64,000 bases of DNA from Lepidodermella squamata (Eukaryota; Animalia; Gastrotricha). Positions 6,535 to 50,578 of this stretch are shown here, in pieces. The first letter of the stretch is position 1, and every line of letters begins with the position of its first letter. The notes under the pieces were generated by a model. The model saw nothing but the letters and a program-made list of their open reading frames with translations, was not told the origin of the DNA and did no database searches. Location: assembly GCA_047495785.1 (NCBI GenBank), contig JBLDXI010000011.1, positions 1,488,001 through 1,552,000 of the forward strand. The letters are read 5' to 3'. The translations under genes were made by a program, and so were the position numbers.

Positions 6535-7490
6535 ATGAGGCTGCCGAAAATCATCGTATGGGAGCCAATAAATACGGCTAAATTTTGGCGCGCAGTCATT
6601 GGCGAATTCACTGCAATCGCCGTCATCGTTTTCATCGGCTGCGGCACGATTTGCCTGCAAAAAAACGGCCAACACGAGTCGACCCCAGCCATCCTGCAGA
6701 CCATGCAAATCGCCCTAGCATTCGGCCTCACTCAAATGATGCTAGAAAAAACGTTCGGACCCGTTTGCGGGTGCCAAATCAACCCGGCTATCAGCATTGC
6801 CTTCGCTCTAGTCGGCAAAATTTCGCTAATTCGAGCTCTGTTTCTGTGCATTGCGCAACTGTTAGGCGCGATTTTAGCCTCGGGGCTGCTTTACGGCTTT
6901 TTGACGCCGGAATTGAGGGGCAACCTTGGCTCGACCCATTTATCGAGCATGACGTCGATCGAACAGGGCTGGGGCATCGAATGTGTGTTGACCTTCATTT
7001 TCACGCTTCAAAAAGCAAACCCGGGTGTTGGAATTGCGCCGCTAATTGGCGGCGTCACGACTATTGCGCTGTGCTTTTTCGGGGTAAGAATTCTTTTTAA
7101 TTAAAAATAAAAAATTAATTATTTAATTATTTAAAAATTAATTAATTTTTTAATTTTTTTCAGATCCCGTTTACCGGGTCGAGTTTGAACCCAGCCCGGT
7201 CGTTTGGACCTGCCCTGATTTCCGGAACCTGGTCAAACCACTGGATCTACTGGGTTGGACCAATCAGCGGCGCCTGTATCGGAATTTTCGTTCACTTCTA
7301 CCTGATTTCGGAAGATTCGATGGCCGATGATTCTATGATGATTGAAAATGGCTCTGTTCTACAATCTTCGCCATCGACCACTAGTGATGTCAGCATTGAA
7401 AGCAACAGCCCGAAGAATAAAATTTCTCCGAATCTTGAATGGAAAGATCGCAACCCTGCGAATAAGGATATTCCGATTGCTGGTCCTTGA
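6535..7490 (+). CDS. Aquaporin (MIP family) paralogue A; exons 6535-7083 and 7164-7490
   Basis: EF in TM1, ALAFGL, first NPA box (GCQINPA), second box [22 protein letters not shown]; GT-AG intron 7084-7163 joins the two ORFs in frame. Confidence 0.95.
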
Positions 7491-10924: not shown

Positions 10925-11899
10925 ATGCGACTACCCACCTTAATCTTATGGGAGCCTTTGAACACCTTTCGATTTTGGCGGTCGATAGCCTGCGAATTCA
11001 TTGCTACGGCAATTTACGTATTCATCGGCTGTGGAACGATTTGTCTCAGCAAAAACGGTGATCGAACTAACAACACGCTTCAAATCGCGTTAGCTTTTGG
11101 CCTCGCTCAAATTACGGTCGAAAAATGCGTGGGACCTATCAGCGGGGCTCATATCAACCCAGCTGTTAGTCTCGCCTTCGCGATATGCGGCAAAATTTCA
11201 GCGATTCGATCAGCAATTTACAGCCTTGCCCAAGTTTTGGGGTCGATTGTCGCCTCGGGTGTTCTCTACGCATTATTACCTGAGAATTTTCGGGGGAATC
11301 TGGGTTCGACTCAGTTATCGGACGATTTATTGATCGAGCAAGGCTGGGGCATCGAATGCGTTCTCACACTCATTTTCATCATTCAAAAATCAAGCTCGGG
11401 CTTTGGAAAATATTCGGCAATTCATGGAATGAACCCTGTGGCGATTGGTCTCACTACCGTCGCGCTTCACTTATTCGGGGTAAAAATTAATTTCAAAAAT
11501 TTCAATTTTCAAATTTCAAATTTTCAGATTTCATTTACTGGGTCAAGTTTGAATCCTGCTCGGTCTTTCGGTCCAGCTCTAATATCCGGAACCTGGGACA
11601 ACCACTGGATTTATTGGGTCGGGCCAATCAGTGGCGCGTGCATCGGAATTTGCGCCCACCGTGTCCTGATTTCGGACAGTTTCGCGGCTCACCACGACTT
11701 CACGCTCCTACAATCGATTTCATCTGCTTCAGGGGCGCATTCTGATGACCACAAGGTGCTGGCTAATAGGACCGGCCTTGAGCGGCATGTCGCCCTGGTT
11801 AGTGGGGAACCGACTGATATCTCACTGGCTCTGGCGCTACCGCAATATTTCGACCGCAAACAGCTATGTCGCCAGCATGTCCCACCTAGAAAATTCTAA
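10925..11899 (+). CDS. Aquaporin (MIP family) paralogue B; exons 10925-11479 and 11528-11899
   Basis: SGAHINPAVS and [14 protein letters not shown] boxes, HWIYWVGP; 48-nt intron 11480-11527 at the same codon position as in paralogue A. Confidence 0.95.
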   Translation: MRLPTLILWEPLNTFRFWRSIACEFIATAIYVFIGCGTICLSKNGDRTNNTLQIALAFGLAQITVEKCVGPISGAHINPAVSLAFAICGKISAIRSAIYSLAQVLGSIVASGVLYALLPENFRGNLGSTQLSDDLLIEQGWGIECVLTLIFIIQKSSSGFGKYSAIHGMNPVAIGLTTVALHLFGVKINFKNFNFQISNFQISFTGSSLNPARSFGPALISGTWDNHWIYWVGPISGACIGICAHRVLISDSFAAHHDFTLLQSISSASGAHSDDHKVLANRTGLERHVALVSGEPTDISLALALPQYFDRKQLCRQHVPPRKF

Positions 11900-12539: not shown

Positions 12540-14058
12540 TTATTCGATAAGGGCATCGTCGCTAGCTGACCGGCGAATGTCCTCGTGATTTTTGAGCTGC
12601 AGATTGGCTAGATGGGCCCGTAAATCTGAAATGAAGCGCTTTATCGCGTATTGCATAGCTTTATTCACGATTGACGATGGAAGACCGCCTTTAACATCCG
12701 AGCTGACTATCCAAACGAATCGCGATAACGGCAAAGTTGAAGCTGGCTGGGGTCTAAATTAAGAAAAAATTCTGGAAAATTCTGGAAAAAATGAGATGAC
12801 TCACATTATTTGACTGAGATAAGGAGAATTTTGAGAAATCAACATGTAAGAACACGGACCAGTTTCACCTCTCACATAACCTTCACGGGGCTAAAATAAA
12901 ATAAATAAAATTCAAGAAAAATGAAGAAAAAATTCGACTTACAGGACTCTTTTTATGGGATGTGCCAATTGATGCCGAGTAAATTACTCCATCTCGAAAT
13001 CCGGTATGCCTCAAATTCACAAAATCTCGAGCTGATACAAAGCCTCCTAATGCTGGTTGAGAAGTTTGGTAAGTAACTTCAATAACCGGCTGTCTGGGCA
13101 ATTTCTTGGTATCAAACCGCTCGATAAGCCGCGATTCGGGTACAAACGGGTGCCACTCGGGCATTTTCGCCATTTCGTCGAATAAAACCTGCCGAAGCCG
13201 TTCGAATCTTGCATTCAAATCGAGAACGACCCGGAAAATCGGCGCGCTTATCCGAAATTCAGGCGCGACAACATTAGAATCAGCCACGCTAACTAGCGTG
13301 CAGTCGTCGAATCCGCTCAACTGCTTCCATTTGACTTTCGGATCGAAAGCCAGGCGGAATATTTCGTCGGTTAGTTTTGTGCAGGTATCGCAGTATGATA
13401 GCAAGGCCTTTTGTTCTTCCGTTAGTATTTCGTCGTCATCTTCCAATACTGCATGCAGTTTATTAGCACGGTTAACGCTGACTTCAGTACCTTCATCACT
13501 GCCAGCTGCTGAGAAGAACCTTTCAGATGCAACAGCACCGTATCTCCTAATCCTAGGGTCCATAACATCCTCGGCAGCAACGACGACAAAGCTAGAATCG
13601 TGTCTACTTCTTGTGACTGAGTTGAGTCTTTGCAATAGCTTGTGAGGATTGTGGATCAATGCCACAAAAAGCCATAGCTCGACCCAAGCAACGAGAAGAT
13701 TAGCGAAGATGAGAACATAGACGAAAGCGGCATTTCCTTCATCGGGATGAGGGTATCTGTATAAGAATACTTTGACGATGGTGAAAGCTGTAGTGATGAC
13801 TGTGGTCATGGCGACGGCAAGGATGCTTGTGGAGCGATATACAGAATGAACGAACAGCAGTTCGAACATGCGAAATGCAGCATTGATCACGCAATCGAAC
13901 AGTGAGCCGTTAAATGAGTAATTTACAACGTCATGAACTATGGAATCGCGGATATCTGCGCCCGTTAGCTGCAGGCATATGACGTAAACGGCAAATACTC
14001 CAATGAGATCAAACGCTGCAAACAGCGCAAATAAACCGAAGGCAGGCTGAGTTGTCAT
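12540..14058 (-). CDS. STARD3: STARD3/MLN64-like cholesterol transfer protein (MENTAL + START); exons 14058-12943, 12890-12805, ~12753-12540
   Basis: Four-TM MENTAL region (FDL, SLFD, AAFR, AWVELW), FFAT-like ERFFSA, START motifs PEWHP, SARDFVNLR, GYVRGETGP, DVKGGLPSSIV; canonical introns keep the frame. Confidence 0.9.
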
Positions 14059-14558
14059 TGTACTCTGGAGATCAGACCTCTAATCAGAGTTATTTAGCCA
14101 TCAGAAATCGTAAACTTGAAGTTTTTCCTGGCAGAATCAATAATCAATGAATCTAAACGATAGAAAAAACTCAATGATGGGGCTTCTGGTTTTGAGACAA
14201 AATGGGTCAAACTAAGATACACATGTTTTAGTGATTAAGAGCCACAGCAGTGGACGATGCGACCCTGATTAATTGCATTTCAAGAGATAAATGGGCGGAA
14301 CGTGAAAGAAAGGTGCACACGAACAAAGAAGCAAAGAAGCAAAGAGCTCTTGGACTCTCGCTTATCTCCGTTCTTCGCTCGTTCGACTTCTGGCACACAA
14401 CACGCAACGTACACCACAACTTCTTTTCAGCGAAAAACAAAGTGGCGCCATTAAATTTCCTGCGGCAAAATAAAATTCTAAAAAATCCAGGAAAATAAAT
14501 ATACAAGGTCATTAAACAGTTTATTTTTTATTTCTGTCAAGTTGTATCTATAGACGCG

Positions 14559-15544
14559 TTGCGAATCAGACCTTGTGACACCGGCCCGTCAGTCCTTTAA
14601 GACTGTGCTTGCTGGACGAGATTGTTCGGGAATCATGAAACCAAGGGCTCTATTACTTGCCTTATTCTGCTGCATAGCGGGAAGGTTTGCTTTGGCGAAC
14701 TTCCCCGAGGAAGGAAGCACACTGCTCTTGGACGATCAAACTGTCGAAGCCGCGGTGCGAACATTTGGGAAATTGTTCGTTATGTTTCACTCCCCGAAAT
14801 GTGAGCACTGTCAAAGTAAGTCACCTAAAATTAGTACTAGTCTCCGATTAAAACCACGTATTTATAGAGGCCTTGCCAGAGTTCGACAAAGCGGCTAGAA
14901 AGCTGCACAAGGACGGATTCGGCGCTATTCGTTTGGCTCGTATAGATACAAGCGTTAGTACAGGCCCACGCAATACCAAAAAGTTTAATTTCAAATCTGT
15001 GCCGGCATTTTACTACATGAATGGACCGGACATAATCACAACCTACCATGGAGAAAGGAAAGCTGCTGATTTCATCTCATACCTGAAAAAGAAGGCTGGA
15101 TTTGCTTGGGATACTATCAACTCAGTTGCTGAAATAAGTAAATTTACGGCCGACGATGATGCTGTCATCTTGGGTCTATTCAAGGACACGGCAATCCACC
15201 AGGCTGAACTATTCAAAACCGTCGCTACAGATGTTGACGGAGTGCCATTTGGAATGTCATCAGAGCAGGAGTTATTTGATCATTATAAAGTGAACGGCTC
15301 TTTCGCAATTATCGCGCTGAAGAAATTCGATGAGAGAATAAATTTCTTCGACGAAGAGTGGGATTACGACGATTTATCTACCTGGGCAAAGCGCCAACGT
15401 CTTCCCTTGGTGATTGAATTCGATAGAAAGTACGCTAATAGCATGTTGGAAGGCGAAAACCGTCGACATGTGTTGTTCTTCATGAAAAAGTATTCCCTCG
15501 ATTTCATTGACAAATTCACAATTTTCAAGAAAGTAGCTGCGAAA
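14559..15544 (+). repeat. 986-bp direct duplication, left copy (matches 20063-21048)
   Basis: Near-identical at offset +5504; identity starts at ttgcgaatcagacc and stops at gtagctgcgaaa. Confidence 0.95.
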
Positions 15545-15595
15545 GCTGTCTCATCTACGTTGCAGCAGAGACGCACGGCCTCGCGCCGCATCTGA
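14635..15595 (+). pseudogene. 3'-truncated copy of the PDI-family gene, fused to LINE sequence
   Basis: Same signal peptide, CEHC site and intron (14816-14867) as the copy at 20139, but after KKVAAK it runs into 16 LINE-derived codons and stops; no a' domain, no HTEL. Confidence 0.85.
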
Positions 15596-15794
15596 CGATA
15601 GAAGACTACGACAAATACGAAGCCGATGGCATTCGCCTAGTCGGAGGCCGCAAATCTGGCGGCATGAACGCGTTCATCTCGAAGAAAATTAAAAATTTGG
15701 TGACAGTTATTATGATCAACCATTACACCTGCATTGTTGCCTTGCCACGGCAATCTCAGCCCACAATATATTTTGTTTTTGCCTATGTCCCCAC

Positions 15795-16833
15795 CAGGGG
15801 CGTAACCAGAAATTTTTTTTGGTAGTTGTTATGGATCTGAGGCAGGGGCGTGACCAGCCTTTCACGGTTGGGGGAGGGGGAGGGGGCAGGGTCATATATT
15901 CAGGGTGAGCTCAAGGATCCAAAAGAGCTATCAGTGATGGAAAAGAATTGTTTGCTTTCTTAAAATGAATTGTAATTTGAACCAAAGCTGGAGCGAAGCG
16001 AGAAGATTTTGAAGATTTGTCTCTCAGAAATACTCCTAAAACTCTTAAAACTATGGGATTTTCCAGTAGCCAACCTGCCAGCTAAATTAAAAGCTAAATT
16101 GCTGAATATGCGAGCGAAGCGAGCTTTAGCTAACGGTATTTCTTAACAATTCGTGCTGAAAATAGTGTAAAAATGGCAGGCTTGTCTAAAATTTCTTTGA
16201 AATGTTATGATTTTTTCCTGCGGTTTTTAAACTTCCGCGGTAGTATTTATTCCAAGCGACCCGCGATCCACAAATTTCAGAGACCCCACTGCCAATAAAG
16301 CTCAAGTTGTAACATATTCTCATCAAACTATATCAAGATTCAATGACGAATCGGCCACTCGCGAGCGAAGCGAGCTTTAGCTAACGGTTTTCATTTCATT
16401 TTCGCCTCAGAATTAGCCTGAAAATGCTTCAAAATTCAGCGAAAAATCATATTTGACATCAAATTTTACACCCCCTAGTTTGAAAGACAGCGATTTCGAG
16501 ATGTACGAAGTGCACAACATTTCATTTTTTGGCAATTTTCCGGATGGTGGTGGGCCCCCGGGCCCCGGCTAGTTACGCCCCTGATCTCAAGGTGGAAAAT
16601 TGATCTTCCCCGGGACAATCCAATGTCGAAGAGTGCCTGTTTTCACTACGAAATATGGACACTATCGGGATTTCGAGCGCAGCGAGAAAATTTTGTGCAA
16701 TTTTGCAAACATTTCCTCCATTTTGTAAGAAATTTTAGGCATTTTCTAGAGAAAATAGGCCGAAGAGGGGTTTTTGAGTTTTCATTTTGGTAGTTGTTTG
16801 AACAACCAAAACAACCAGCTGGTTACGCCACTG
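15795..16833. mobile_element. Non-autonomous hAT element inserted in the LINE endonuclease
   Basis: TIR caggggcgtaaccag / ctggttacgccactg; perfect 8-bp TSD gtccccac (15787-15794, 16834-16841); removal restores AYVPTDST. Confidence 0.92.
15843..16583. mobile_element. Second hAT-like element nested inside the first
   Basis: TIR caggggcgtgaccag / ctagttacgcccctg; flanks atctgagg / atctcaag (6/8, eroded TSD); internal gcgagcgaagcgagctttagctaacggt repeats. Confidence 0.7.
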
Positions 16834-16955
16834 GTCCCCACGGATTCAACTTCACAGTCTCATAGCGATGCATTCTCAAACCTCAACGACCTAATCGAAA
16901 ACAAGATCTGCTCATCCGGTGAAAAGTACGAATTGGTGCTACTTGGTGATCTGAA

Positions 16956-19925
16956 TTGCCGCCTTGGTCAGCTCTCCGACGTGGATTCAAGCTGTGTCCC
17001 CCCCCCCCCCCCCCCCGGTGCAGCGTTGATGCGAAGTCGCACGACGAAGCCTTGCTGCTATCGCTAATCGAGCAACAAAATCTTTATGTCTTGAATGGGC
17101 GTTACCCTCCCGACGTCCGAGGCGAACTGACTCATTTCTCTGTCCATGGCGACTCGCTCATCGACTACGGCCTTGCCTCTCTGAGCCTCGCCCAATCAAT
17201 CCGCTCTTTCGAAGTGAAAAGGTGTTCTACGAGCTCCGATCACGCCCGTATAACTGCTAATATTGCAGTTGGGCATAGCTCTCAGACCCTAAGTAGACTT
17301 CGCATGAAAACAGATAAGCTTAAAGATATGTTGTTACATGAACTTAATTCGGTACCATTGACTACAGCGCAAGATATGGCTAATCATTTGGAGAGAATCA
17401 CGCAGTCCTGCACTAAGCCACCGTCTCGAAAATTGCCAGCAGGGATCAAAGCTGCGAACTATCGGCCGAAAAACTTCGAGCTGAGGCAACTGGGTGAAGC
17501 GAACCCAGTTACTAAGGAAGACCAGGCGACCTTCGACGAGCTGGTGAAACACCCGACAAAAATTTGGAAGTTAAAAGCTCGCGAACCCGATGGCTCCGGT
17601 CCCCCGGCCAACGACTATCGGGCCCATCTAATCAACCTATTCTCCCAGAACGCCATAGCGCAAATGCCTCCGATTACCAGCAACGCGAAACCTACAGTCA
17701 TTCATCCCCTGATACCGCTATGGGCATCTGCTGTTGGTGGTCTGTTTAAATACAAGCTTGGGCAAGACGATATGGCAATGCGCTGGCGTGCTCTCTCCGG
17801 GGAGACCCCGGTGAAATTGAGCTCCCTCCGTGATATGAGATATTGGGAAACTTGGTTGTGCCCGCCGCGATACTACACTTCCGATACCGACGATTACTTC
17901 CGGTGGCGTTCCCTACGCTCAGAACCTCCGGCCAAATCATCTGCTGCGCCGTCTCGAGACGGGCTCCTGACTAGCGCCGTTACGGTCGAAGAAATCCGAG
18001 ACTGCATCGATAACTGCAACCCCCGCTCAGCTGCCGGCCCAGATGGCATGTCCTTCCGCGACATCAAAGATAATCTTGAGGTTCTAGCACCCTACCTATC
18101 GATATTATTCACTCGTGTGTTGCTCGAGGGTAAATTCCCGGAAAACTGGAAAAGTGCCATAATATGCCCTATCTTCAAAAAGGGCGATAGGAACGATGTC
18201 TCCAATTTCAGGCCCATATGTTTACAAAACTGCGTAGCAAAGGCCTTCTCCCGGTTACTAGAACGCCGACTCCGACGGTGGCTATCTGCCTTCTCACCAC
18301 TTCGCCAAGAGCAATTTGGATTCAAGCCTGGGTCTTCCACACTGGACGCCACGGTAGTCCTTCACATGGCAGCTTCCTACGCGATGGAGCGTCTATCTCG
18401 AGGTGTCTACTGCGCCTTCGTAGATTTTAGTTCAGCGTTTGATACCGTTAACCATGGTCTTCTCATCTCCAAGTTACGTAAAAGAGGAGTACCCGAATCG
18501 TTCCTTGCAGTCGTCAAAGATATGTATACCGGTTGCAATGCTAAAGTCTTTTCTAACGGTGAATTTAGTGAGGAATTTCCGGTGACAAATGGAGTCAAAC
18601 AGGGCGACCCGCTCTCTCCGCTTCTCTTCAGTATATTTATCGACGATCTCGTCGAGGTCCTGGAAAAAACCGGCGGTCGAGGCCTGCAGCTTGGTCATAA
18701 GATACTGCGTGCTATTCTATATGCCGACGATGTGGCCATTGTTGCAGAATCAGCTAACGAACTGCAGGGCTACCTAAATGCACTGGAGGTTTTTTCTCGT
18801 GAAAATGGGCTGAAAGTCAACACAAGTAAAACCAAGATCATCTGTTTTGAAAAAACCCCCAGTATCTCCCACCCGGATTTCTTCTTTGAAGGTGAAAAGC
18901 TGGAGCAAGTCAGTGAATTTAAATATCTGGGAGTATGGCTTGACTCACGTTTGTTGTACAAGAAGGCGGTGAAGGAAGCGAAGACCCGACTTCGCCGAAC
19001 GATCGGCGCTCTGCCTACCCTCTTCAACAATATTAGCTCATTCCCGCTGAGTGCTCTACGCTCCTTATACAATGGCTGCGCTCTTGGAGCCTATGTGTAT
19101 GGGGCTGAGATCTGGGGCCTATTCGCCAATGAAACCGACCTGCAGGACCACGCCAGGTTCGCCAAACGCTGTCTTGGTCTACCAACAGCAACCAAACACA
19201 CGTTACTGTTGCACGACTTCAAGCTTCTCTCACCAAAATTGGCACACGAACAGGCTGCGATCCGTTTTCACTATCGCATGGCGGAAGCGCCATCGGAATC
19301 ATTACTCGGGAACGCGTTCACTGCTTCTCAGTGGATGAAAAACGTCCCGCGTAATCTGTCCTTTCGCGCAAGGGAACTGATTGACAAATTGCACCTGAGC
19401 GATGTCAGTGAAATCGATGTTCCGGCCCACGTCAAGATCGTGCTGGCGAAGCGGCAATCCTTGCTGGCTGCGGACAAGCTGATCGCGATGGAAATTGTTA
19501 GTCACTACCCTAAACACCCGTTCTACGGTCAGCGTGGCGCGGCAAATATGGCCGAAAATTACTTCCTGGCTCTTCCACTCGATCTGGCCAAGGCACTTCT
19601 GCTCATAAGGTGCGACGCTCTCTTTAAACCGGCCCAACTTAGGCATCCGAACATTTGCCTGCTCTGCGGCGTCGATCTGCCCATCGCAGGAAAAGGTATG
19701 GGTTGGCGACAAGTATTACATCTCATCCTGCAATGCTCACGCACCACGACCAAGATGGCGCCGTTTCGCTCGAGTACCCACAAAGGTTTCGACGAGGCGC
19801 GTCTGGCCTGCCTGTTCAATCTGATGGATACCGGCCACCCCGACCAACCGGCACTGCTATCCTACGCTCTAAAAGAGCTCAGAGAGCTGAGTCTTAGTAA
19901 AATTGTTATTGAATCTAATGAATAA
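16956..19925 (+). CDS. LINE ORF2 (C-terminal part of APE, reverse transcriptase), frameshifted from the upstream APE part at a 19-C run
   Basis: 989-aa ORF with RT motifs; the GDLN motif lies in a different frame upstream of poly-C 16998-17016. Confidence 0.9.
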   Translation: MPPWSALRRGFKLCPPPPPPRCSVDAKSHDEALLLSLIEQQNLYVLNGRYPPDVRGELTHFSVHGDSLIDYGLASLSLAQSIRSFEVKRCSTSSDHARITANIAVGHSSQTLSRLRMKTDKLKDMLLHELNSVPLTTAQDMANHLERITQSCTKPPSRKLPAGIKAANYRPKNFELRQLGEANPVTKEDQATFDELVKHPTKIWKLKAREPDGSGPPANDYRAHLINLFSQNAIAQMPPITSNAKPTVIHPLIPLWASAVGGLFKYKLGQDDMAMRWRALSGETPVKLSSLRDMRYWETWLCPPRYYTSDTDDYFRWRSLRSEPPAKSSAAPSRDGLLTSAVTVEEIRDCIDNCNPRSAAGPDGMSFRDIKDNLEVLAPYLSILFTRVLLEGKFPENWKSAIICPIFKKGDRNDVSNFRPICLQNCVAKAFSRLLERRLRRWLSAFSPLRQEQFGFKPGSSTLDATVVLHMAASYAMERLSRGVYCAFVDFSSAFDTVNHGLLISKLRKRGVPESFLAVVKDMYTGCNAKVFSNGEFSEEFPVTNGVKQGDPLSPLLFSIFIDDLVEVLEKTGGRGLQLGHKILRAILYADDVAIVAESANELQGYLNALEVFSRENGLKVNTSKTKIICFEKTPSISHPDFFFEGEKLEQVSEFKYLGVWLDSRLLYKKAVKEAKTRLRRTIGALPTLFNNISSFPLSALRSLYNGCALGAYVYGAEIWGLFANETDLQDHARFAKRCLGLPTATKHTLLLHDFKLLSPKLAHEQAAIRFHYRMAEAPSESLLGNAFTASQWMKNVPRNLSFRARELIDKLHLSDVSEIDVPAHVKIVLAKRQSLLAADKLIAMEIVSHYPKHPFYGQRGAANMAENYFLALPLDLAKALLLIRCDALFKPAQLRHPNICLLCGVDLPIAGKGMGWRQVLHLILQCSRTTTKMAPFRSSTHKGFDEARLACLFNLMDTGHPDQPALLSYALKELRELSLSKIVIESNE

Positions 19926-20138
19926 CTGCGAGCTGCTATGGCCTTACGGTAATATTATTACTCATCTAACCGTTTTGTGTTTCTTTTTTCTATATTGTTA
20001 ATATGAAATATTGTCTGTCAATTGTCTGGCGTCGACAATAAATCCATTCCATTCCATTCCATTTGCGAATCAGACCTTGTGACACCGGCCCGTCAGTCCT
20101 TTAAGACTGTGCTTGCTGGACGAGATTGTTCGGGAATC

Positions 20139-21693
20139 ATGAAACCAAGGGCTCTATTACTTGCCTTATTCTGCTGCATAGCGGGAAGGTTTGCTTTGGC
20201 GAACTTCCCCGAGGAAGGAAGCACACTGCTCTTGGACGATCAAACTGTCGAAGCCGCGGTGCGAACATTTGGGAAATTGTTCGTTATGTTTCACTCCCCG
20301 AAATGTGAGCACTGTCAAAGTAAGTCACCTAAAATTAGTACTAGTCTCCGATTAAAACCACGTATTTATAGAGGCCTTGCCAGAGTTCGACAAAGCGGCT
20401 AGAAAGCTGCACAAGGACGGATTCGGCGCTATTCGTTTGGCTCGTATAGATACAAGCGTTAGTACAGGCCCACGCAATACCAAAAAGTTTAATTTCAAAT
20501 CTGTGCCGGCATTTTACTACATGAATGGACCGGACATAATCACAACCTACCATGGAGAAAGGAAAGCTGCTGATTTCATCTCATACCTGAAAAAGAAGGC
20601 TGGATTTGCTTGGGATACTATCAACTCAGTTGCTGAAATAAGTAAATTTACGGCCGACGATGATGCTGTCATCTTGGGTCTATTCAAGGACACGGCAATC
20701 CACCAGGCTGAGCTATTCAAAACCGTCGCTACTGATGTTGACGGAGTGCCATTTGGAATGTCATCAGAGCAGGAGTTATTTGATCATTATAAAGTGAATG
20801 GCTCTTTCGCAATTATCGCGCTGAAGAAATTCGATGAGAGAATAAATTTCTTCGACGACGAGTGGGATTACGACGATTTATCTACCTGGGCAAAGCGCCA
20901 ACGTCTTCCCTTGGTGATTGAATTCGATAGAAAGTACGCTAATAGCATGTTGGAAGGTGAAAACCGTCGACATGTGTTGTTCTTCATGAAAAAGTCTTCC
21001 CTCGATTTCATTGATAAATTTACGATTTTCAAAAAAGTAGCTGCGAAATTCCGATATCAATTTTTGTTTATCTTCATCGATGCTGACGTGAAAGATCACG
21101 AAAGAACGATTACTTTCTTCCAAGTTGGGCCGCGTGACTACCCAACAGTTCGAGCTATTGGCATGGAAACAGATCCAAATAAAGTTCTAAAACCTGAGGA
21201 TACTTCATTCACTGAAGAAGCCATCACTCAATTTGTTACTGATTTCGGAAACGGCCGTTTAGTCAAAAGGCGCGGTAAGAAGTCGCAGGAAGAGCCAAAA
21301 GATTGGGATAGCAAGCCACTGAAAGTTTTGACTGCTGATACCTTTCATACTCGAACAAAGGACCATCACGCCCTGGTTTTGTTCTACAAGGAGAAGCAAT
21401 TGTGCCAGAAATGCGAAGATTCCCTTCAGCTATTCCAAGATCTAGCCGAGGAATTCGGCTATCAAAACAATAATCACGTTATGATTGCCAAAATTGATGG
21501 CAGTCTCAACCAAATGCCGAAGGTTGAAGTCACGAAGTACCCGACTATTAAATTTCTACCCCGAGGACTCGATGTTGTCCTCGATTATAAAGGCGAGCCA
21601 ACATTCGACGCCATTGTTCGTTACATCAATTCTTACGCTACGCCCGTTGATCAGCCGAAACCTGAAGAAACTGAAAATCATACCGAATTGTGA
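20139..21693 (+). CDS. Protein disulfide isomerase family member (a-b-b'-a'), full length; intron 20320-20371
   Basis: Signal peptide, thioredoxin sites CEHC and CQKC, LPLVIEF, KSQEEPKDWD..PLKVL, IAKIDGSLN, YPTIKF, C-terminal HTEL ER-retention signal. Confidence 0.92.
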
Positions 21694-40646: not shown

Positions 40647-41752
40647 ATGGCCGAGAATCGAGACAACGCACAGCTCAACAACAGCTCAACTGCGCAAATG
40701 TGTAAGCTATCGTTTACTGCTTAGTCTGAGAAAGTTTTTAATTTTCCTTCTAATTCTTCTAATTCGGTTGAATGGCTTGTTTTACTGATGATTGAAGACA
40801 TTGCAAGAGTTCTTGTACATTCATTCTGTTTCAATGCTGCTTTGAAGTTGTCCTGAAAGAAATATGGTTAACTACTAAGGGTTTAGCATCAAATTTAGTT
40901 GGGTTTTATTTGCTTAATTCTTGGTACTTGTGGGATTTGCTGTAATTTCATGACCCAAGTTACTCATGCATTGTTTTCATTGTTTTCTTGTGCTTCTCAG
41001 CTATACAAGATTTCATGCGCACTGTGCTGGCTGAGTTGGCCGCGGCGAGGGAGGAGCGGGCGGAGTTGCGGGCTGTCGCTCGAGCGCAGGCTGCGGAGAT
41101 CAGCGAGTTGCGGGCTGCCGTCCGTCGCCTCGAGGGGACGTCTCGTCCAAACGTAAGTTACTTAATAATAATAAACAAGGCTATTGCATCTCTTGCTGCA
41201 ACTTCTCTCGAGTATCGGGGCGATAGATAACATCGGATACATTGGGCTGTCAACTAAGGGTCAAACGTTCCACCACGCCTCCTCAGCCTTGTTTTGTCAT
41301 TGAATTTCAGAAAAAAATCTCCTGTATGATGCGATTTGCCTAAGTATCAGGCAAAATTTGTAAATTTTCTTTATTGTTCACGAAATTCGATTTCAGGGGC
41401 AATTCTTTTTAGTCGTGAAATGAGCAAAATCTCAGGGTTCAGGGTAGTGAAATTCATAAGAAATGTCAACAATTTAGTAAAATCCTCTTATGAGAACTCT
41501 GGTTTAGTTAATGAATATAATGATGAATATTAAATGGGTTCCATCATTACTTGGCACACCCTGTTAAAATGAATGGCGTCTACAGCACTTTTCGGCCGAC
41601 CGGCTCTCGCCGATTTGCTATTGATACTGCACATTTTCTGATTCAATAACAAGAATAACGCTTTTACAACATCGATGCAATTTTCCTGTTTCCCCCCACT
41701 ATAGAAGGATCTGCGGCGGATCGTGTTGTCGAAATCTCGTCTTCCGAAATGA
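40647..41752 (+). CDS. Ala-rich coiled-coil microprotein, copy 3 (~83 aa); exons 40647-40701, 41001-41152, 41705/41708-41752
   Basis: gtaagc and gtaagt donors; frame-consistent MAENRDN...-IQDFMRTVLAEL...SRPN-(K)DLRRIVLSKSRLPK*. Confidence 0.75.
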
Positions 41753-42262: not shown

Positions 42263-44378
42263 ATGGAGAATACTGCTGCTACCACTGCTGCGTCTGCTAC
42301 GAGCGCAACAACCGAGATCAGTAAGCTATCTTTCTATACGTTTACCAGTGCTTTGGATTTGATTTGATTTGATTTGATTTACCGAGAGGGATGCAATCGA
42401 AAAACTTGAAATTTTGGATGTCGTTATACTAAGATATTTCCGCCTGTTTTGCTGAAAATTCGCTTGGGAGAGGGACGTTAGTTTCAAATTCGCGTTATTT
42501 TATTCATTACTTGAATTTTCAAAGCCCCCAGATTGGTGAAAATCCTGATGTTTCGTGATTTATTGTGATTTATGAGTATCAATGATTCGATTTGATTGAT
42601 TTGGTTCCGTAAAAGTGGGGCATTGATTGATTTTGATTGATTGAATGAGGCCCGTGATTTAAGCCGTAATTCAACTCAAATCAAATCCAAAGCTCTGACG
42701 TTTCCTCTGAGAAACTAGAACAACGGCAAATGATTGTTCATCAATGAAACTATCATAATTTGTCCGGAAAAAGTTCGATGAAAACCTGAATTGTCCTGCT
42801 TTGTCGGGTTTTGTTGATAATTTTTATATACATTTCGGTACCCAGAAATTCGAGGCAGTTTAATGATCGATAAAAGTAAAGAACGATTGTAATTGTTTGC
42901 CTGTAATTACTGATGATTGAAGACATCGCAAGAGTTCTTGTACATTCATTCTGAGTGATGTCCTATGTTTAAAGTTTAAATGCTGCTTTGAAATTTTCGT
43001 GAAAGAAATATTGTTATCAAATGTAGTTGGGTTTTATTTGGTTAATTCTCGGATATGAGATCCGCTGTAATTTAATGACCCAAGTTTTTCATGCATTGTT
43101 TTCTTGTGACTAATAGCTATGCAAGACTTCATGGTCAGCGTGCTGGCGGAATTGGCCGCGACGAGGCGGGCAGCGGAAGCCGCTCAAGCTGCCGCGGAAG
43201 CCGGCCAAGCCGTCGCCCGAGCTCAGGCGGCGGAGATCGGCGAGCTGCGGGCTGCCGTCCAAGCGCAGGCTGCCGAAATCGGCGAGGTGCGGGCTGCCGT
43301 CCGTCGCCTTGAGGGGACGTCTCATCCAAACGTAAGTTACCTAATCGCGTTGAACAAGGCTATGGAATCTTTATTGAATTGCGTCTCTCCTTGCAACTTC
43401 TCTCGAGTTCTCATATCGGGGCGATTGATAACATCGGAAACATTTAAGGGTCAAACGTTCCAACTTGCATGCAATTCTACGCCTCGCCATGTATTGTCAT
43501 GGTGACTAGTGGAAAAATCGGTTTTCGGAAAAACGTGTCCTGTATGATGCGCTTTGCCTAAATATCAAGCTGAATTTGTAGATTTTCTTCATTTTTCACG
43601 TAATTCGAATTCAGGGGCGAATCGTGAGCAATATCTCAGGGTTCAGGGTAGCAAAACATATAAGAAATGTCAACAATTTAGTAAATGCTCAAATCCTCTT
43701 ATGAGAACTTGGGTTTCGTTGCTGATGATTATAAAATGGATCCAAACATTCGCACCACTAAAATGAAGTTCCAGCACTAAATTTAACGTCTTTGTACACA
43801 TTTTTCATATTAGGTATTTGATATTTCGGGTTTTCTTTTTTGGATGGATACTCTTGCGCCAACTGAACCTAGCATTTTTTGTTCAAGCTACCTGGCGCCC
43901 TAAGCTTCGTAGAAAATTTTCGCTGGTGGGTTCCACGACGGCTGTTATCGGAAAAATCACTAATTAGCAATATCGATACTTGAAATCGATATCTGCTGTA
44001 TATGCTGAAGTATAACTCATAAACTGACCGCTTATAGCCCAAAATAAGCGTCTATTAGTTGGGCATGATCTTGAAAAATTGAGGATACATGAAACGCGAA
44101 AAAAAATATCTAAGGGAAATCTCGTGCTAGAGTCTCAAATTTGGTGCTGGAACCCTACATTAAGGTTACGCAATTGGCACACCCTGTTAAAATGAATAGC
44201 GTCTACAGCACTTTCCGGCAATCCGGCTCTCGCCGATTTGCTATTGATAGGCTACTGCACATTTTCTGATTTAATAACAAAAATAACGCTTTTACAATAT
44301 CAATGCAATTTTCCTGTTTCCCCTCGCTAGAAGGATCTGCGGCGGATCGTCTTGTCGAAATCTCGTCTTCCGAAATGA
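42263..44378 (+). CDS. Ala-rich coiled-coil microprotein, copy 4 (~105 aa); exons 42263-42320, 43117-43331, 44331/44334-44378
   Basis: Same donors, acceptors and phases as copy 3; the introns are alignable paralogues of 40775-41770. Confidence 0.75.
42346..42697. mobile_element. hAT-type MITE in intron 1 of microgene copy 4
   Basis: TIR cagtgctttggatttgatttga / tcaaatcaaatccaaagctctg; 8-bp flanks acgtttac / acgtttcc. Confidence 0.82.
43766..44157. mobile_element. Probable MITE in intron 2 of copy 4 (absent from copy 3)
   Basis: gttccagcactaaattt / aaatttggtgctggaac inverted ends; a similar end occurs near 48990; TSD unclear. Confidence 0.55.
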
Positions 44379-45949: not shown

Positions 45950-46717
45950 CCTTTTCACTTCCTCAATATTTCTCCCTTTAATTATTCACGCTCAGAAAGA
46001 TCTCAATCATATTGTGTCATATAAAATTGATTTTTAAGGCAGAAATAAAATTGAATGTTTTAGCTCAATTTGTGCAATTTTAAGCTGGATAAGAGCGATT
46101 TTTGTAGTCATTTTTTAAAAAATTTTGAATGGGGTTTTTAAAGTGAAATATTATCTAGTAGTGCGGGAAACAAAGTCGAGAAAATAACACAATTTTAGTG
46201 CGCGAAAGTTCGGAAAAAATGGTTTAGGGTGATCCGGAAATCGTTTGGGGTCTGCGAAACTTGTGAATTTACCATGCCTCTGTTGGAAGTTGAGAAATAC
46301 AATTAAATATGTTTTCATTTTTGTCAACGATTTGAGAGGATAATTTTCGAATAAAAGTTCAAATTTCTAATTTTTGCTATCATCGAGGAATTTTTCGCAG
46401 TCCAATATAAAATGTGAGCATAGAAAATGCAGGAAAAATTATTTTGATCCAACCCGGTTAAACACCAAAAATTACAAAAAATGTTGTACCATCGGGATTT
46501 TCTGCGGTGGATGTAAAAAATTTAGACCGAAATTTTTCAAAAATATTTATTGCAAAAAAACATGCGAAACCCCTTAAAAATTCGTTCGGTAAATTTTGCT
46601 AGGCCGCAAATGGTAAGTTTAATTTTTTTAAATTGACGAATTCCGAAATATAGTAGCCAGAGACATTTGAATATAATTATTTCTGATTTTTCAATAGATT
46701 AATTTTTGAGATATAAA

Positions 46718-47665
46718 ATGAAACGAGCCCTGCGAAGTTCTTCAGCAGCTGAAGCTAAGTTATCAAAAGTGGAAGTTGACGATCCCAGCAGTCCAACCCC
46801 CGATTTCGCGAATTTACCGCCAGAAATTCTTCACCTAATTTTCTCGCAATTTTCCAGCAATTTCTACTATCTCGGAAAATGTGCTCAGGTCTGCCGAAAT
46901 TGGCGAAACATCATCGATACGAACGCCATGATTTTCGAAATTTGGAAACAAGAATTCAAGCCGAAATCAGTGGCTTCGTTTGACCCTGAGAAAATTGCCG
47001 AATTGCGGAAAATCCTGAAATTACCTGACAATTTGTTCGGAAGAAACGGATATTATTTCTCTGAAGAAATCATGGAGCGACCTGCAATTGATCTAGGACG
47101 ACTGCGGCACGTACTTTCCATGCCTAAATTGGACCTAATTGCTATCGTTGTGGGCCATAGATATGAATCAACCGAGTTCCGCGGCGTTGTAACGAACTTC
47201 AAAAGTGGATCAAAAAAGTATCAACTGATCAATCTCGGATCAATTTTGCCGAATTTTACGGCTTTGTCCACCCTGGGGTTTTCCATTGTATTCGGCCCGT
47301 CGGACAACTTTCCCCGCCCATCGGAATGGGGTGAATTTCGTTGCCTGGACGCGGATTTTTTCGTGATTAAGGCGGATTTTGAGGTCCAGGAGACTTACTG
47401 CGTGCTACAGCGATTGCCGGCCAATTGCCGTTACATTTTAGCGACAAATTTATGGCGATATGAAAATATTCGATCGATGTGGCCGAGTCAGTTGGCTGAG
47501 TTCACTGAAACTGCGGATTTGCAAGCTGAGGGTTACCACGAGATCTACGACGGTGAGAACTGCTCGGAATTTGACGACCAGGAGAGCTGTGAGAGTGAAA
47601 GTGGAAGCGAGGATTCTGACGACGATGACCCGTTCGGCTTTTTTCCGTGCTGCGGCGGCTGCTGA
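46718..47665 (+). CDS. F-box protein, subfamily B copy 1
   Basis: FANLPPEILHLIFSQF...CAQVCRNWR; ends with an acidic tract then PFGFFPCCGGC; 5'-UTR intron ~46613-46697. Confidence 0.88.
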   Translation: MKRALRSSSAAEAKLSKVEVDDPSSPTPDFANLPPEILHLIFSQFSSNFYYLGKCAQVCRNWRNIIDTNAMIFEIWKQEFKPKSVASFDPEKIAELRKILKLPDNLFGRNGYYFSEEIMERPAIDLGRLRHVLSMPKLDLIAIVVGHRYESTEFRGVVTNFKSGSKKYQLINLGSILPNFTALSTLGFSIVFGPSDNFPRPSEWGEFRCLDADFFVIKADFEVQETYCVLQRLPANCRYILATNLWRYENIRSMWPSQLAEFTETADLQAEGYHEIYDGENCSEFDDQESCESESGSEDSDDDDPFGFFPCCGGC

Positions 47666-48462
47666 TTGGCGTGAAAAATCACGAAAAAATAAAGACAAGA
47701 AATTTGTTTTCCAATTTACGTAATTTTGCTAATTTTTTAAAATGTGTTGTTGACTCTGGAAAAATGTTGAAAATAGCTTGAATATTTTATATATTAAATT
47801 TTGTAAACTTTTTATCGAAACGGATTAAGAATAATCTTCGATGCTGATCAAATGAAAGTCGCCGTTGCTATACATTCTAATTTTTCCGGTTTTTATCTGC
47901 TAATATGTTCTAATTTTCTATTTAATTTTCGGTTTCTTAAAAAAATCACTTGACTGATGCAATGCTTCCTTAAAAATGAGCTTGGTGTAATTTTCCTAAT
48001 TTTCATTATTTATCCTTGCTCAATTTCGTTCCTATATTTAATATTCGATAAAATTAAAGTTTTGTGACTGAACTGGTAATTTTTCCGGTAATTTTGATGC
48101 TGTAGATTTTACCAGATAAATTCGAGTCGCAATGAATAAATATGTTGATTGTTGCCTTGGTTTCGGTTCTATTTGATAATAAAATCGCGGTTTTAACAAT
48201 CGGATTTACTCTCTATATTATACGAAAAAAATATTTTTTTTAGATCGCGTAATTCGAATATTGAACCGTATTCTGAAATATCGAAAGTGATGCTGGACTG
48301 GAAAACAGTGACATTTTTTAGAAATTTCCGATCGATTTTCCAGAGTTTTTATTACCTTAACTGACCCTACGATTGGTGAGTTTCGTACCTGGCACCCTCA
48401 GGTATGTAATATAATTTTCGATTCTGGCTTCGTAAGCTGCTGGAAAAATTATAAATTTGATA

Positions 48463-48653: not shown

Positions 48654-49071
48654 TATTGGAAATTGATATCGGCTACACAGGCTATGTGTAACTCGACCGA
48701 TATCGCAAAACACGCATAAGTTTAAGATCTATCGGCTGGGCTTGATTAACAAAATCGAAACTGAAAACCATATTTTGTTGGATCGAGCAGAGACGCCTTT
48801 TAAATTAACTGGCGATTTTCGAGTCGCAGTTCGGGCCCAAAAATGATTTTGCACAGCTGATTGTCAATCGTTGAAATGACCCCTTTCAAGTCTCATTAGC
48901 TCAATTACTGTCGACTTGTCAAGATATCGCAATTTTTCGGTCGAAGGAAGAAGTATTTCTTATAATTCTTATAAAGAATGAGCCAAAATTAGGGTTCCAG
49001 CGCTTAATTTGAGGCTCTGATTTTTTAATTATTTCTGATTTTTCAACAGGGGTAGATTTTTTGAGATTGAA

Positions 49072-50004
49072 ATGAAACGAGTCCTGCGAAGTTCTTCGGC
49101 AGCTGAAGCTAAATTATCAAAAGTCGAAGCTGGAAAACTGAGTTCAACACCTGATTTCGCAAATTTACCGCCGGAAATTCTTCATCAAATTTTTTCGCAA
49201 TTTTTTCGTGACTTCATCCACCTTGGACGATGTGCTCAGGTGTGCCGAAATTGGCGGAACATCATCGACTCGAACGCCGTAATTTTGGAAATCTGGAAAA
49301 AGGAATTTAAGCCAAAATCAGTGGCATCATTCGACCTTGAAAACATTGCTGAATTGCGAAAAATCCTGAAAATACCTGATAATTTGTTCGGAAGTGGTGG
49401 ATTTTATTTCTCTGAAAAATCCTTGGAAGGACCTGCAATCGATTTAGGACGACTTCGCAATATTCCGACCCTGCCTATCTTGGATCTAATTTCAATCATT
49501 TTGGGCGGTAGATACGATTCGACCGACTTCCCTGATTTTTTAACTAATTTCAAAAGTGGATCAAAAGCGTATCAACTGATCAATCTCGGAGCAATAACGC
49601 CCAGTTTTAGGATGTTGTCCACGCTCGGCTTTTCTATTGTCATCGGACCACCGGAAAGTTTTCCTTACGGATCGGAATGGGGCGAATTTCGGTGCTTAGA
49701 CGGTGATTTCCGCGTGATTAAGGCGGATTTTCAGATCGCTGAGACTTACTGCGTTTTGCAGCGATTGCCGGCTAATTGCCGTTATATTTTAGCGAGCCAT
49801 TTGTCGAGGCATCAACATATCAGATGCATGTGGCCGAGTCAGTTGAAAGATTTCACGCAGAAAGAAGATTATCAAGTTGAGACCTTCCACGACGTCTATG
49901 GTTACGGTTCGGATTTAGGAGAAGAGGAGAGCCGCGGGAGTGACAGCAGTGAAGATTCTGATGACGACCCTTTCGGATGGTTCCCATGCTGTAGCGGCTG
50001 TTGA
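49072..50004 (+). CDS. F-box protein, subfamily B copy 2
   Basis: Close paralogue of 46718; ends PFGWFPCCSGC. Confidence 0.88.
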   Translation: MKRVLRSSSAAEAKLSKVEAGKLSSTPDFANLPPEILHQIFSQFFRDFIHLGRCAQVCRNWRNIIDSNAVILEIWKKEFKPKSVASFDLENIAELRKILKIPDNLFGSGGFYFSEKSLEGPAIDLGRLRNIPTLPILDLISIILGGRYDSTDFPDFLTNFKSGSKAYQLINLGAITPSFRMLSTLGFSIVIGPPESFPYGSEWGEFRCLDGDFRVIKADFQIAETYCVLQRLPANCRYILASHLSRHQHIRCMWPSQLKDFTQKEDYQVETFHDVYGYGSDLGEEESRGSDSSEDSDDDPFGWFPCCSGC

Positions 50005-50578
50005 TTGGCCGGGAAAAATTCGAAGAAATAATGGCAAACAAATTTTTTGTATTCGAATTTACGTAATTTTCAAAATCGATCGTTGAATATCGATTAATTT
50101 TATCTGTTATATTGTTTGAATAATTTTTTCATATTTAATTCTTGAAAATTTGACCTGTTTTTGTGAAATTATTTTAATAAAAATTTGAAATAATAATTTT
50201 TTGAATTTTGATCAAAAAATAAAATCTCCGATGCTATCAATCATATTTTCCGGTTTTGATCTGCTAAAAAAATTCACTACTGAGTTTGTCGAATTTCTTC
50301 GCGTTTCTGGATGAAATAAATGTCAAAATTTCTATTTGCTCAATTTTTTTCTATATTTTTAATTTTTCATCAACAAGCATTTTAGCCTGCGAATTTTATG
50401 ACTTGAACGATCATTTTTATGAAATTAAATCTTGCATATTGTTAATGAATCTTTTATTTACCCGCTGAAATATTAACTCGATAAATCTGCCTCACGACCG
50501 CGTGAACTAATAATCACTTTGCTTTGCTTCTAAATTTGACAATAAAATTATGTATCATAAAAGAGCCATTTTCGATAA

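Follow-up and report, generated by a model that had tools for sequence, protein, structure and literature searches.

How the front part of a gene comes to stand on both sides of a LINE is the question raised by this locus of Lepidodermella squamata, which lies in a 64-kb stretch of DNA referred to here as the window (the whole 64,000 nucleotides analysed). Two copies of one segment of a PDI-family gene, D1 upstream and D2 downstream, form an ungapped 986-bp direct repeat that is identical at 976 of 986 positions. The edges of the repeat are sharp, as the similarity has a backward extension of zero at 14559/20063 and is wholly lost past offset 986 (15544/21048). The sequence-only reading had described a layout of 986 bp of the PDI 5′ part, a 5′-truncated LINE ending in (ATTCC)n, and the same 986 bp followed by the rest of PDI; this layout is matched to the base, and the repeat edges coincide exactly with the LINE ends at 15544/15545 and 20062/20063. 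Two features went beyond that reading, namely a nested 1039-bp MITE and the confinement of the ten mismatches to the last ~337 bp of the repeat.

The duplicated segment opens with 76 nt of 5′ flank and runs through exon 1 and the 52-nt intron (GT..AG) into exon 2, of which it takes in 677 nt, so that it holds 286 of the 500 PDI codons, including the start (the front 57% of the gene). Within D1, exon 1 (14635-14815) and the intron (14816-14867) are followed by the first 677 nt of exon 2, after which the reading frame enters the LINE for 16 codons and ends at a stop at 15593-15595. The intact gene is composed of exon 1 (20139-20319), the intron (20320-20371) and exon 2 (20372-21693). The two exons were searched separately against Pfam, the spliced join serving only to assign codon positions; exon 2 matches Thioredoxin_6 (E 3e-28) and Thioredoxin (E 4e-12), and exon 1 searched alone gave no domain match. 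The predicted protein possesses the a-b-b′-a′ thioredoxin-fold architecture, CxxC sites (CEHC at the exon 1/exon 2 junction region and CQKC in a′) and a C-terminal ER retention signal, HTEL, that characterize the PDI family. The intergenic region between the gene and its divergent STARD3-like neighbor measures 576 bp and is common to both genes (Table 1).

Table 1. Position and orientation of the elements of the duplicated PDI locus, in window coordinates
Feature	Position	Strand	Remarks
STARD3-like gene (MENTAL + START domains), divergent, upstream	12883..14058	-	single 391-codon ORF
D1, upstream copy	14559..15544	+	PDI 5′ part, native upstream region kept
LINE 5′-truncated start, endonuclease part of ORF2	15545..15794	+	first residue ~95 in the C7 frame
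Non-autonomous DNA transposon (hAT-like MITE), nested in LINE	15795..16833	.	1039 bp
LINE remainder	16834..20062	+	RVT_1 frame, AATAAA, tail
D2, downstream copy	20063..21048	+	continuous with the remainder of the PDI gene
PDI-family gene, full length	20139..21693	+	500 codons, ending HTEL-stop

Since the 52-nt intron is present in D1 and D2 alike, the copy was made at the level of DNA, as had been claimed from the sequence. A processed retrocopy of the PDI gene is rejected on the same ground, the intron having been kept and no A-tail being present after the duplicated segment. A reading of the repeats as LTRs or pseudo-LTRs is likewise rejected, because they are PDI sequence confined to this locus and absent from other LINE copies; a DNA search of the 121-Mb assembly found the segment at D1 and D2 only. 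No further structure of the same type was found within the 64-kb window.

The LINE insert (15545-20062) carries a 989-codon open frame at 16956-19925 with an RVT_1 match (E 3.6e-41). Its relative C7, which is 71% identical, has a 1197-residue frame with an Exo_endo_phos_2 plus RVT_1 architecture, in which the Exo_endo_phos_2 match at residues 172-292 scores 27.1 bits against a cut-off of 27.4 (E 4e-6). The window LINE aligns to C7 residues 95-229 as two pieces split by the MITE, neither of which has a Pfam match alone, and its start near residue 95 of the C7 frame shows it to be 5′-truncated; it is a dead element. A poly-C(19) run at 16998-17016 is the site of a frame shift relative to C7. The 3′ end comprises an AATAAA at 20037-20042 and, preceded by TCC, an (ATTCC)3AT tail at 20046-20062. 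C7, C55 and the window copy have in common an AATAAA-proximal (ATTCC)n terminus and differ at their 5′ ends; the tail is native to the LINE family. Both parts of the earlier description, the truncation and the (ATTCC)n end, are thus borne out by the alignment to the C7 frame and by the tail common to C7 and C55. In the assembly the family is very low-copy, with one fragment at 90% nucleotide identity to the window LINE (C1), one at 83% and others at or below 71%. The Pfam domains of the lineage are RVT_1 and Exo_endo_phos_2 only, its matches in the protein atlas fall into generic APE-RT clusters, and a Pfam search of the partial ORF1 of C7 gave no match.

The element nested in the LINE has 15-nt TIRs with one mismatch and an 8-bp TSD, GTCCCCAC, at 15787-15794 and 16834-16841, features by which it may be classed as hAT-like. 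There is no long ORF in it. In C1 the same site is uninterrupted by the MITE, which belongs to a family that is multi-copy in the genome and whose nearest relatives are 84-94% identical.

The argument on origin draws on the structure of the two junctions. A direct repeat of host DNA adjoins the LINE 5′ end on one side and the 3′ tail on the other, and microhomology is found at both. At the tail, the target starts with TT, which extends the tail repeat. At the 5′ junction, upstream of whose truncation point C1 and C7 continue in frame, the C1 sequence ends in GAAAA and the duplicated segment in GAAA, which amounts to a perfect 4-nt microhomology, or 9 of 10 positions with one gap. Both junctions look like the product of TPRT.

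The locus is therefore probably the outcome of a single LINE retrotransposition event by TPRT, in which the breaks in the two target strands lay 986 bp apart. Here, a bottom-strand nick at 14558/14559 of the ancestral locus would have opened the target 76 nt ahead of the PDI ATG. The LINE RNA would have paired by its (ATTCC)n terminus with the target TT to begin reverse transcription, which would have halted within the part of ORF2 that encodes the endonuclease. Through GAAA, the end of the cDNA would then have annealed to a top-strand 3′ end located 986 bp downstream rather than a few bp away, and fill-in of the 986-nt stagger would place the segment on both sides of the insert. In which order the nicks came, and what caused the distal top-strand break, we only infer. 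The pre-insertion state is a reconstruction, because the assembly holds no empty-site allele or haplotig. Among the routes that the sequence-only reading had offered, the best supported is the one in which the second strand breaks or anneals some 1 kb away from the first nick, on the strength of these junction hallmarks and of recurrence at three other loci.

Measurement of the flanks of other LINE copies gave both long and short duplications. In three other LINE lineages the same architecture is encountered, the LINE 5′ end adjoining one target copy and the microsatellite tail the other, with duplications that are 100% identical: 116 bp at L061, with a (TCAA)n tail; 440 bp at L042, including part of a MITE; and 477 bp at L040/L068, with an (ATC)n tail. 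Counting the PDI locus, four independent loci have this precise architecture. TSDs of 5-20 bp were measured at other LINE copies in the genome. It counts against the single-event explanation that C55, the sole other resolvable copy of the exact LINE family, has a TSD of ~5 bp. At three of the four long-TSD sites CGCG lies no more than 1-2 nt from the nick and an AT-rich stretch 25-38 nt upstream, and both are absent at four short-TSD sites. ORF lists and Pfam scans revealed no gene context downstream of L061 and L040/L067.

D1 and D2 are not identical, and on the single-event explanation a second haplotype is needed as an extra step, which counts against it. All ten differences fall in the last ~337 bp (P = 2e-5), nine of them at codon position 3 (P = 3.6e-4); eight are synonymous, and pS is 0.117 versus a pN of 0.007. 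By this synonymous bias the differences are imported allelic polymorphism of a constrained gene and not decay of a dead copy; they predate the event and entered from a second PDI haplotype, whether through meiotic recombination or gene conversion after the event, through homolog-templated synthesis, or through a haplotype or consensus switch in the assembly. Dead-copy decay as their source is rejected, as nine of ten at codon position 3 has P ~0.002 even if only D2 was constrained, and as the pS of 0.117 is incompatible with the bound set by the open LINE frame, in which the lack of a stop in 989 codons limits divergence to at most 2.7% (95% bound). A paralogous donor of gene conversion is also rejected: the DNA search returned D1 and D2 only, and the next PDI paralog in the assembly is only 33% identical in amino acids. 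The first 649 bp of the two copies show no difference (95% upper bound 0.46%), and with these 649 bp identical and the 989 LINE codons open the insertion event is judged to be young. A very young insertion is not easily squared with LINE relatives at 90% or less and MITE relatives at only 84-94%, unless the MITE was already present in the source element or divergent MITE lineages are active.

The same differences bring in the first of the alternatives, that within the same event a double-strand break at 14558/14559, nearly blunt, was followed by break-induced or synthesis-dependent copying, which made the duplication. The left end would invade a homologous duplex, copy ~986 nt and anneal by microhomology to the LINE cDNA; with the homologous chromosome as template for the last third, the distal part of D1 would have been the other allele from the start. 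One step would thereby account for the allelic-type differences in D1 beside the LINE 5′ junction, the GAAA microhomology suits the annealing step, and such a mechanism has been proposed for 1-10-kb L1-associated tandem duplications (bioRxiv 10.1101/2024.12.14.628481). We nevertheless consider it unlikely, since a template switch near offset 649 is an additional assumption and the complete identity of the three other long duplications gives no sign of homolog templating there; from sequence alone, copying is indistinguishable from a distant second nick.

Two insertion events make up a second and clearly less probable alternative. Here, two independent insertions of the same LINE, at 14558/14559 in one allele and at offset 986 in the other and both pointing the same way, would have been joined by a crossover inside the LINE, or else an older insertion at offset 986 would have yielded, by read-through from the PDI promoter, an RNA that re-inserted at that promoter and was resolved by homology (a 5′-transduction version). 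Recombination of nascent cDNA with homologous genomic sequence has been described for L1 (PMC5223499), and both versions would derive D1, or its distal part, from another allele than D2, which is what the synonymous-biased differences call for. To that extent the suggestion, made at first reading, of unequal recombination between two allelic insertions retains some merit. It is rendered less likely because a LINE of very low copy number would have to hit twice independently within 1 kb, with the two hits alike in orientation; moreover, the source or intermediate allele is absent from the assembly, and the single-event architecture with identical copies occurs elsewhere in the genome.

The allelic-type variants could also mean that two haplotypes entered the consensus, that is, that a heterozygous region was mis-joined and the segment displayed twice. 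Such an assembly artefact is very improbable: the junction of offset 986 with the LINE 5′ end and that of the tail with the first base of the segment never occur together in one simple insertion allele, so that merged 'filled' and 'empty' haplotypes cannot yield them, and in addition both junctions bear TPRT signatures, the locus lies 1.5 Mb inside a contig without N, and the precise architecture is found at four independent loci. Least credible of all is an RNA-derived D1, for which the reverse transcriptase, having copied the LINE RNA, would have moved to nascent PDI pre-mRNA before splicing and run to the 5′ end of that template. The LINE lies in the sense of the gene, junction microhomology is typical of template switching, and the first base of the segment lies 76 nt ahead of the ATG and is itself preceded, at 25-38 nt, by an AT-rich, TATA-like stretch, but the start of D1 would have to be the transcription start site and the first nick match it exactly, the intron is retained, and other long duplications hold non-genic or TE sequence (the MITE part in L042).

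The favored explanation, one TPRT event with widely separated breaks, has precedents. The sequence-only reading had taken TSDs to be normally tens of bp at most, but kilobase TSDs have already been published (PMC5223499; PMC9977147; bioRxiv 10.1101/2024.12.14.628481), and the surprise is smaller than was first supposed. Human L1 TSDs in NER-deficient cells reach up to 5.3 kb, with a median of 1495 bp (PMC5223499), and large L1 TSDs had been described earlier (Gilbert 2002/2005 and Symer 2002, as cited in PMC5223499). In these large L1 TSDs (>100 bp to 5.3 kb), as here, the target repeat adjoins the 5′ end of a usually 5′-truncated LINE and its 3′ tail, the kilobase size range is alike, and the L1 authors state outright that duplication can extend to exons (PMC5223499). 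They differ in being somatic and de novo, produced in human cell lines by an engineered L1 whose tail is poly(A), whereas in the present case a LINE with a microsatellite tail, probably of APE type, inserted naturally in the germline of an invertebrate that has XPA, XPC/Rad4 and ERCC1/Rad10 domains. Loss of NER genes as the cause of the long TSDs is not supported, because XPA_C, Rad4 and Rad10 domains all score above cut-off. L1-linked tandem duplications of 1-10 kb in cancer genomes and L1-induced clones have similarly been taken as large TSDs with a LINE at the duplication junction (bioRxiv 10.1101/2024.12.14.628481); these are somatic or tumor events of human L1, and no allelic mosaic in the duplicate is described there.

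Among natural genomes, Dualen-4b in Chlamydomonas mutation-accumulation lines is a non-LTR element with flanking duplications of ~1 kb (median 900 bp; PMC9977147). For Dualen such duplications are habitual and its two endonucleases (RLE and APE) are invoked by the authors as the cause, whereas relatives of the LINE studied here have an APE-type domain only. R9 of bdelloid rotifers is, like the present element, an animal LINE with a long TSD, reproducibly of 126 bp (Gladyshev and Arkhipova 2009, as cited in PMC9977147); R9 is rDNA-specific with this fixed length, while the duplications at the loci sampled here vary from 116 to 986 bp at sites that are not rDNA. Kilobase-long TSDs of LINEs are rare, yet on record, and they recur in this genome.

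A further proposal, which we hold to be doubtful, is that in this animal kilobase LINE duplications are not accidents and arise at active promoters, the first nick falling at or beside the start of transcription and the distal break at the outer limit of a co-transcriptional R-loop or of some other transcription-linked lesion. A nick at the transcription start combined with a distal transcription-linked break would leave the LINE in the orientation of the gene and the 5′ part of the gene copied. The CGCG and AT-rich features of the long-TSD sites, the start of the PDI duplication 76 nt before the ATG and the gene-sense LINE are weak, post hoc hints in this direction. If the proposal is true, LINEs would regularly give rise to partial duplications of the 5′ parts of genes and to promoter capture.

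For the PDI gene itself, the predicted outcome is that the native upstream region drives a truncated product composed of a, b and part of b′ plus 16 LINE-encoded residues, and the intact copy now lies behind the LINE, where 76 nt of its own 5′ flank are left to it downstream of the tail. The allelic-type differences between the copies are a warning against dating such duplications by divergence. A LINE-driven route to partial gene duplication, as first proposed for this locus, finds support in the LINE-end-exact junctions, the retained intron and the recurrence, and the locus provides a natural germline case in which one LINE insertion duplicates ~1 kb of target including the front 57% of a gene, kilobase TSDs having so far been documented mainly from cell-culture assays, tumors and one algal element. 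The findings suggest that placement of the second-strand break is unusually loose in this lineage, and the genome offers a natural system for the step of LINE integration that is least understood, namely cleavage and synthesis of the second strand.

The arrangement proposed by the sequence-only reading, in which 986 bp of a protein disulfide isomerase (PDI) gene precede a truncated LINE that is followed by the same 986 bp and the rest of the gene, was confirmed by direct comparison of the repeat copies, which align without gaps and share 976 identities. Not one further base matches to the left, similarity collapses totally beyond offset 986, and the insert lies directly between the two copies, as claimed. 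The duplicated segment comprises 76 nt 5′ of the ATG, a 181-nt exon 1, 677 nt of exon 2 and, between the exons, the 52-nt GT..AG intron whose inclusion had also been proposed; the genome of this invertebrate (121 Mb in 151 contigs) is intron-poor. The PDI exons were searched one by one, and the spliced join served for codon-position assignment in local scripts. The open frame from the downstream copy onward terminates at 21693 and specifies a PDI-family protein of 500 codons in which the domains Thioredoxin_6 (E 3e-28) and Thioredoxin (E 4e-12) are recognised, and the frame of the upstream copy continues for 16 codons inside the insert before a stop at 15593-15595. The active sites of the PDI-family gene are non-canonical (CEHC and CQKC instead of CGHC), its C-terminus is HTEL, and its nearest genomic paralog is just 33% identical (contig C32:1188304-1189831).

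Coordinates of features in the window and at related loci (positions prefixed with L are in the coordinate systems of other fetched RT-bearing loci)
Feature	Position	Strand	Remarks
STARD3-like gene	12883-14058	minus	intronless, 391 codons, MENTAL and START domains
Upstream copy of direct repeat	14559-15544		
LINE insert	15545-20062		4518 bp
Nested element	15795-16833		1039 bp; insert offsets 251-1289
Downstream copy of direct repeat	20063-21048		
Full-length PDI-family gene	20139-21693		
Diverged direct repeats in window	46674-47727 vs 49026-50070; 40782-41520 vs 42907-43734; 6553-7319 vs 10943-11684		
Locus L061, contig C13	L061:1209-3281		116-bp duplication; (TCAA)n tail
Locus L042, contig C14	L042:794-4112	minus (LINE)	440-bp duplication, partly MITE sequence; tail ends CTACTAC
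Locus L040/L068, contig C9	L068:1501-1977 with L040:347-5281		477-bp duplication; (ATC)n tail
Long-TSD sites with CGCG and AT-rich stretch	window 14519-14558; L061:1169-1208; L068:1461-1500		

The insert carries a 989-codon open frame with an RVT_1 domain (E 3.6e-41). A 71%-identical relative on contig C7 has a 1197-residue frame with Exo_endo_phos_2 and RVT_1 domains, 5′ of which lies an additional open frame, presumably ORF1. Comparison with relatives bore out the description of the LINE as 5′-truncated with an (ATTCC)n end: it begins at about residue 95 of the C7 frame and is therefore truncated, and since a fragment on contig C55 (83% identical) has the same AATAAA-proximal (ATTCC)n terminus as the C7 copy, the tail at 20046-20062 is its true 3′ end. 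The frame departs from that of C7 at a poly-C(19) run at 16998-17016, which is also the exact end point of a same-family fragment on contig C1; the run may be either an assembly error in a homopolymer or a genuine hot spot for insertions. The nested element is a hAT-like MITE with 15-nt terminal inverted repeats starting CAGGGGCGTAACCAG, flanked by an 8-bp target-site duplication (TSD) GTCCCCAC at 15787-15794 and 16834-16841, and its uninterrupted target site is seen in a 90%-identical C1 LINE fragment. The MITE family has dozens of genomic copies, many of them internally deleted forms of about 300 bp that keep the termini alone; the nearest relatives of the nested copy are just 84-94% identical, though the host LINE appears young. 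Because of its truncation, the nested MITE and the frame change at the poly-C run, the LINE copy is dead.

At the 3′ junction the tail finishes AT and the target opens TT, so that the ATTCC register is continued. At the 5′ junction the C1 copy reaches further upstream than the truncation point; its LINE sequence there is in frame and ends GAAAA, and the duplicated segment ends GAAA, a microhomology of 4 nt if perfect or 9/10 with one gap. Target-primed reverse transcription (TPRT) with microhomology-mediated 5′ joining leaves such marks at 5′-truncated L1 elements, and both features are expected traces of this process. The best explanation of the structure, and a reasonably probable one, is a single TPRT event. 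From the observed anatomy we infer in what order the steps occurred and how the distal break arose: the bottom strand would be nicked at 14558/14559, second-strand synthesis would start from a top-strand 3′ end 986 bp downstream, and filling in of the stagger would yield the duplication. A variant of this event that proceeds by break-induced replication, as proposed for 1-10-kb L1-associated tandem duplications "regarded as large TSDs" (bioRxiv 10.1101/2024.12.14.628481), is considered improbable.

All 10 differences between the copies fall at offsets 649-970 (clustering P ~2e-5), and the first 649 bp, 5′ flank and intron included, are identical. Nine of the ten affect third codon positions (P = 3.6e-4), and 8 are synonymous and 2 non-synonymous (E223D, Y269S), giving the distal segment a pS of 0.117 and a pN of 0.007. 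Neutral decay of the upstream copy beside a constrained downstream copy would be expected to produce ~67-71% non-synonymous differences, and was rejected because 2 of 10 were observed (P ~0.001-0.003 for two or fewer). Post-insertion divergence of the LINE is bounded at ≤2.7% (95%) by its 989 open codons, and pairwise divergence of the copies at ≤0.46% by the identical 649 bp; set against a pS of 0.117, these bounds indicate that the distal differences predate the insertion. Their pattern is that of standing polymorphism in a gene under constraint, and they thus derive from a second PDI allele; no second allele or close paralog was found in the 121-Mb assembly. The allele may have entered after the event, by crossover or conversion with an empty-site haplotype, or during it, by synthesis templated on the homolog; a third candidate is a consensus/haplotype switch in a collapsed assembly. 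Two allelic insertions followed by a crossover inside the LINE, also envisaged in the sequence-only reading, would account for the allelic differences, but require two hits within 1 kb of each other by a very low-copy family.

Flanking duplications at other LINE copies, a measurement that the earlier reading had proposed for copies of this LINE, were sought by self-comparison of 29 further RT-bearing loci taken from this genome. Three had the window-type order of target copy, LINE 5′ end, microsatellite tail and second target copy, with duplications of 116, 440 and 477 bp, all 100% identical. Their LINE proteins are just 39-49% identical to that of the window and hence represent different lineages. 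Copies with ordinary TSDs of 20, 15, 13 and ~5 bp are also present. At L068 a 207-codon LINE open frame (L068:1968-2591) takes its ATG from the host, the codon lying in the final 10 nt of the 477-bp duplication, which is host-derived; chance or microhomology may explain this. Elsewhere the window has diverged direct repeats (66-77%, ~0.8-1 kb), none LINE-associated, that probably represent tandem duplicates of genes. That the structure is purely an assembly artefact is unlikely, given that the same precise arrangement recurs at independent loci and that no simple insertion allele contains both junctions, so that a merge of filled and empty haplotypes could not yield the pair. Derivation of the upstream copy from an RNA template switch is disfavoured, as the nick would have to match the transcription start.

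Loss of NER genes, a cause of long TSDs suggested by the literature, is not supported, as the genome has XPA_C, Rad4 and Rad10 domains. Three of the 4 long-TSD sites combine a CGCG at most 1-2 nt from the first nick with a TATA-like, AT-rich stretch 25-38 nt upstream, a pattern that is post hoc with n = 4; both features are absent from all four short-TSD sites, and CGCG occurs at 3.5 per kb in the window. The pattern may reflect an association with promoters or transcription starts, or endonuclease preference, and it motivates a speculative transcription-linked model in which the first nick would lie at or near an active transcription start and the second break at the edge of a transcription-linked lesion.

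In NER-deficient cells the shortest L1 TSDs measure 5 bp and the longest 5.3 kb (median 1495 bp); in complemented cells they reach 1.6 kb, and exon duplication by long TSDs is considered possible (PMC5223499). According to PMC9977147, Dualen insertions in Chlamydomonas carry duplications of median 900 bp; the same paper cites rotifer R9, with a TSD of 126 bp, as the earlier record among natural elements. The mechanism class is thus already known (PMC5223499; bioRxiv 10.1101/2024.12.14.628481; PMC9977147), and the sequence-only interpretation of a LINE-driven partial gene duplication is supported but not its implied rarity, kilobase TSDs having been documented.

The STARD3-like and PDI genes are divergent and share a 576-bp region, directly behind which the truncated upstream copy now lies. 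The intact PDI gene retains 76 nt of native 5′ flank, downstream of the LINE AATAAA and tail; a read-through transcript might, speculatively, be rescued by trans-splicing. What is new here is a natural germline example of such gene duplication in an animal, in a genome where these events are recurrent.
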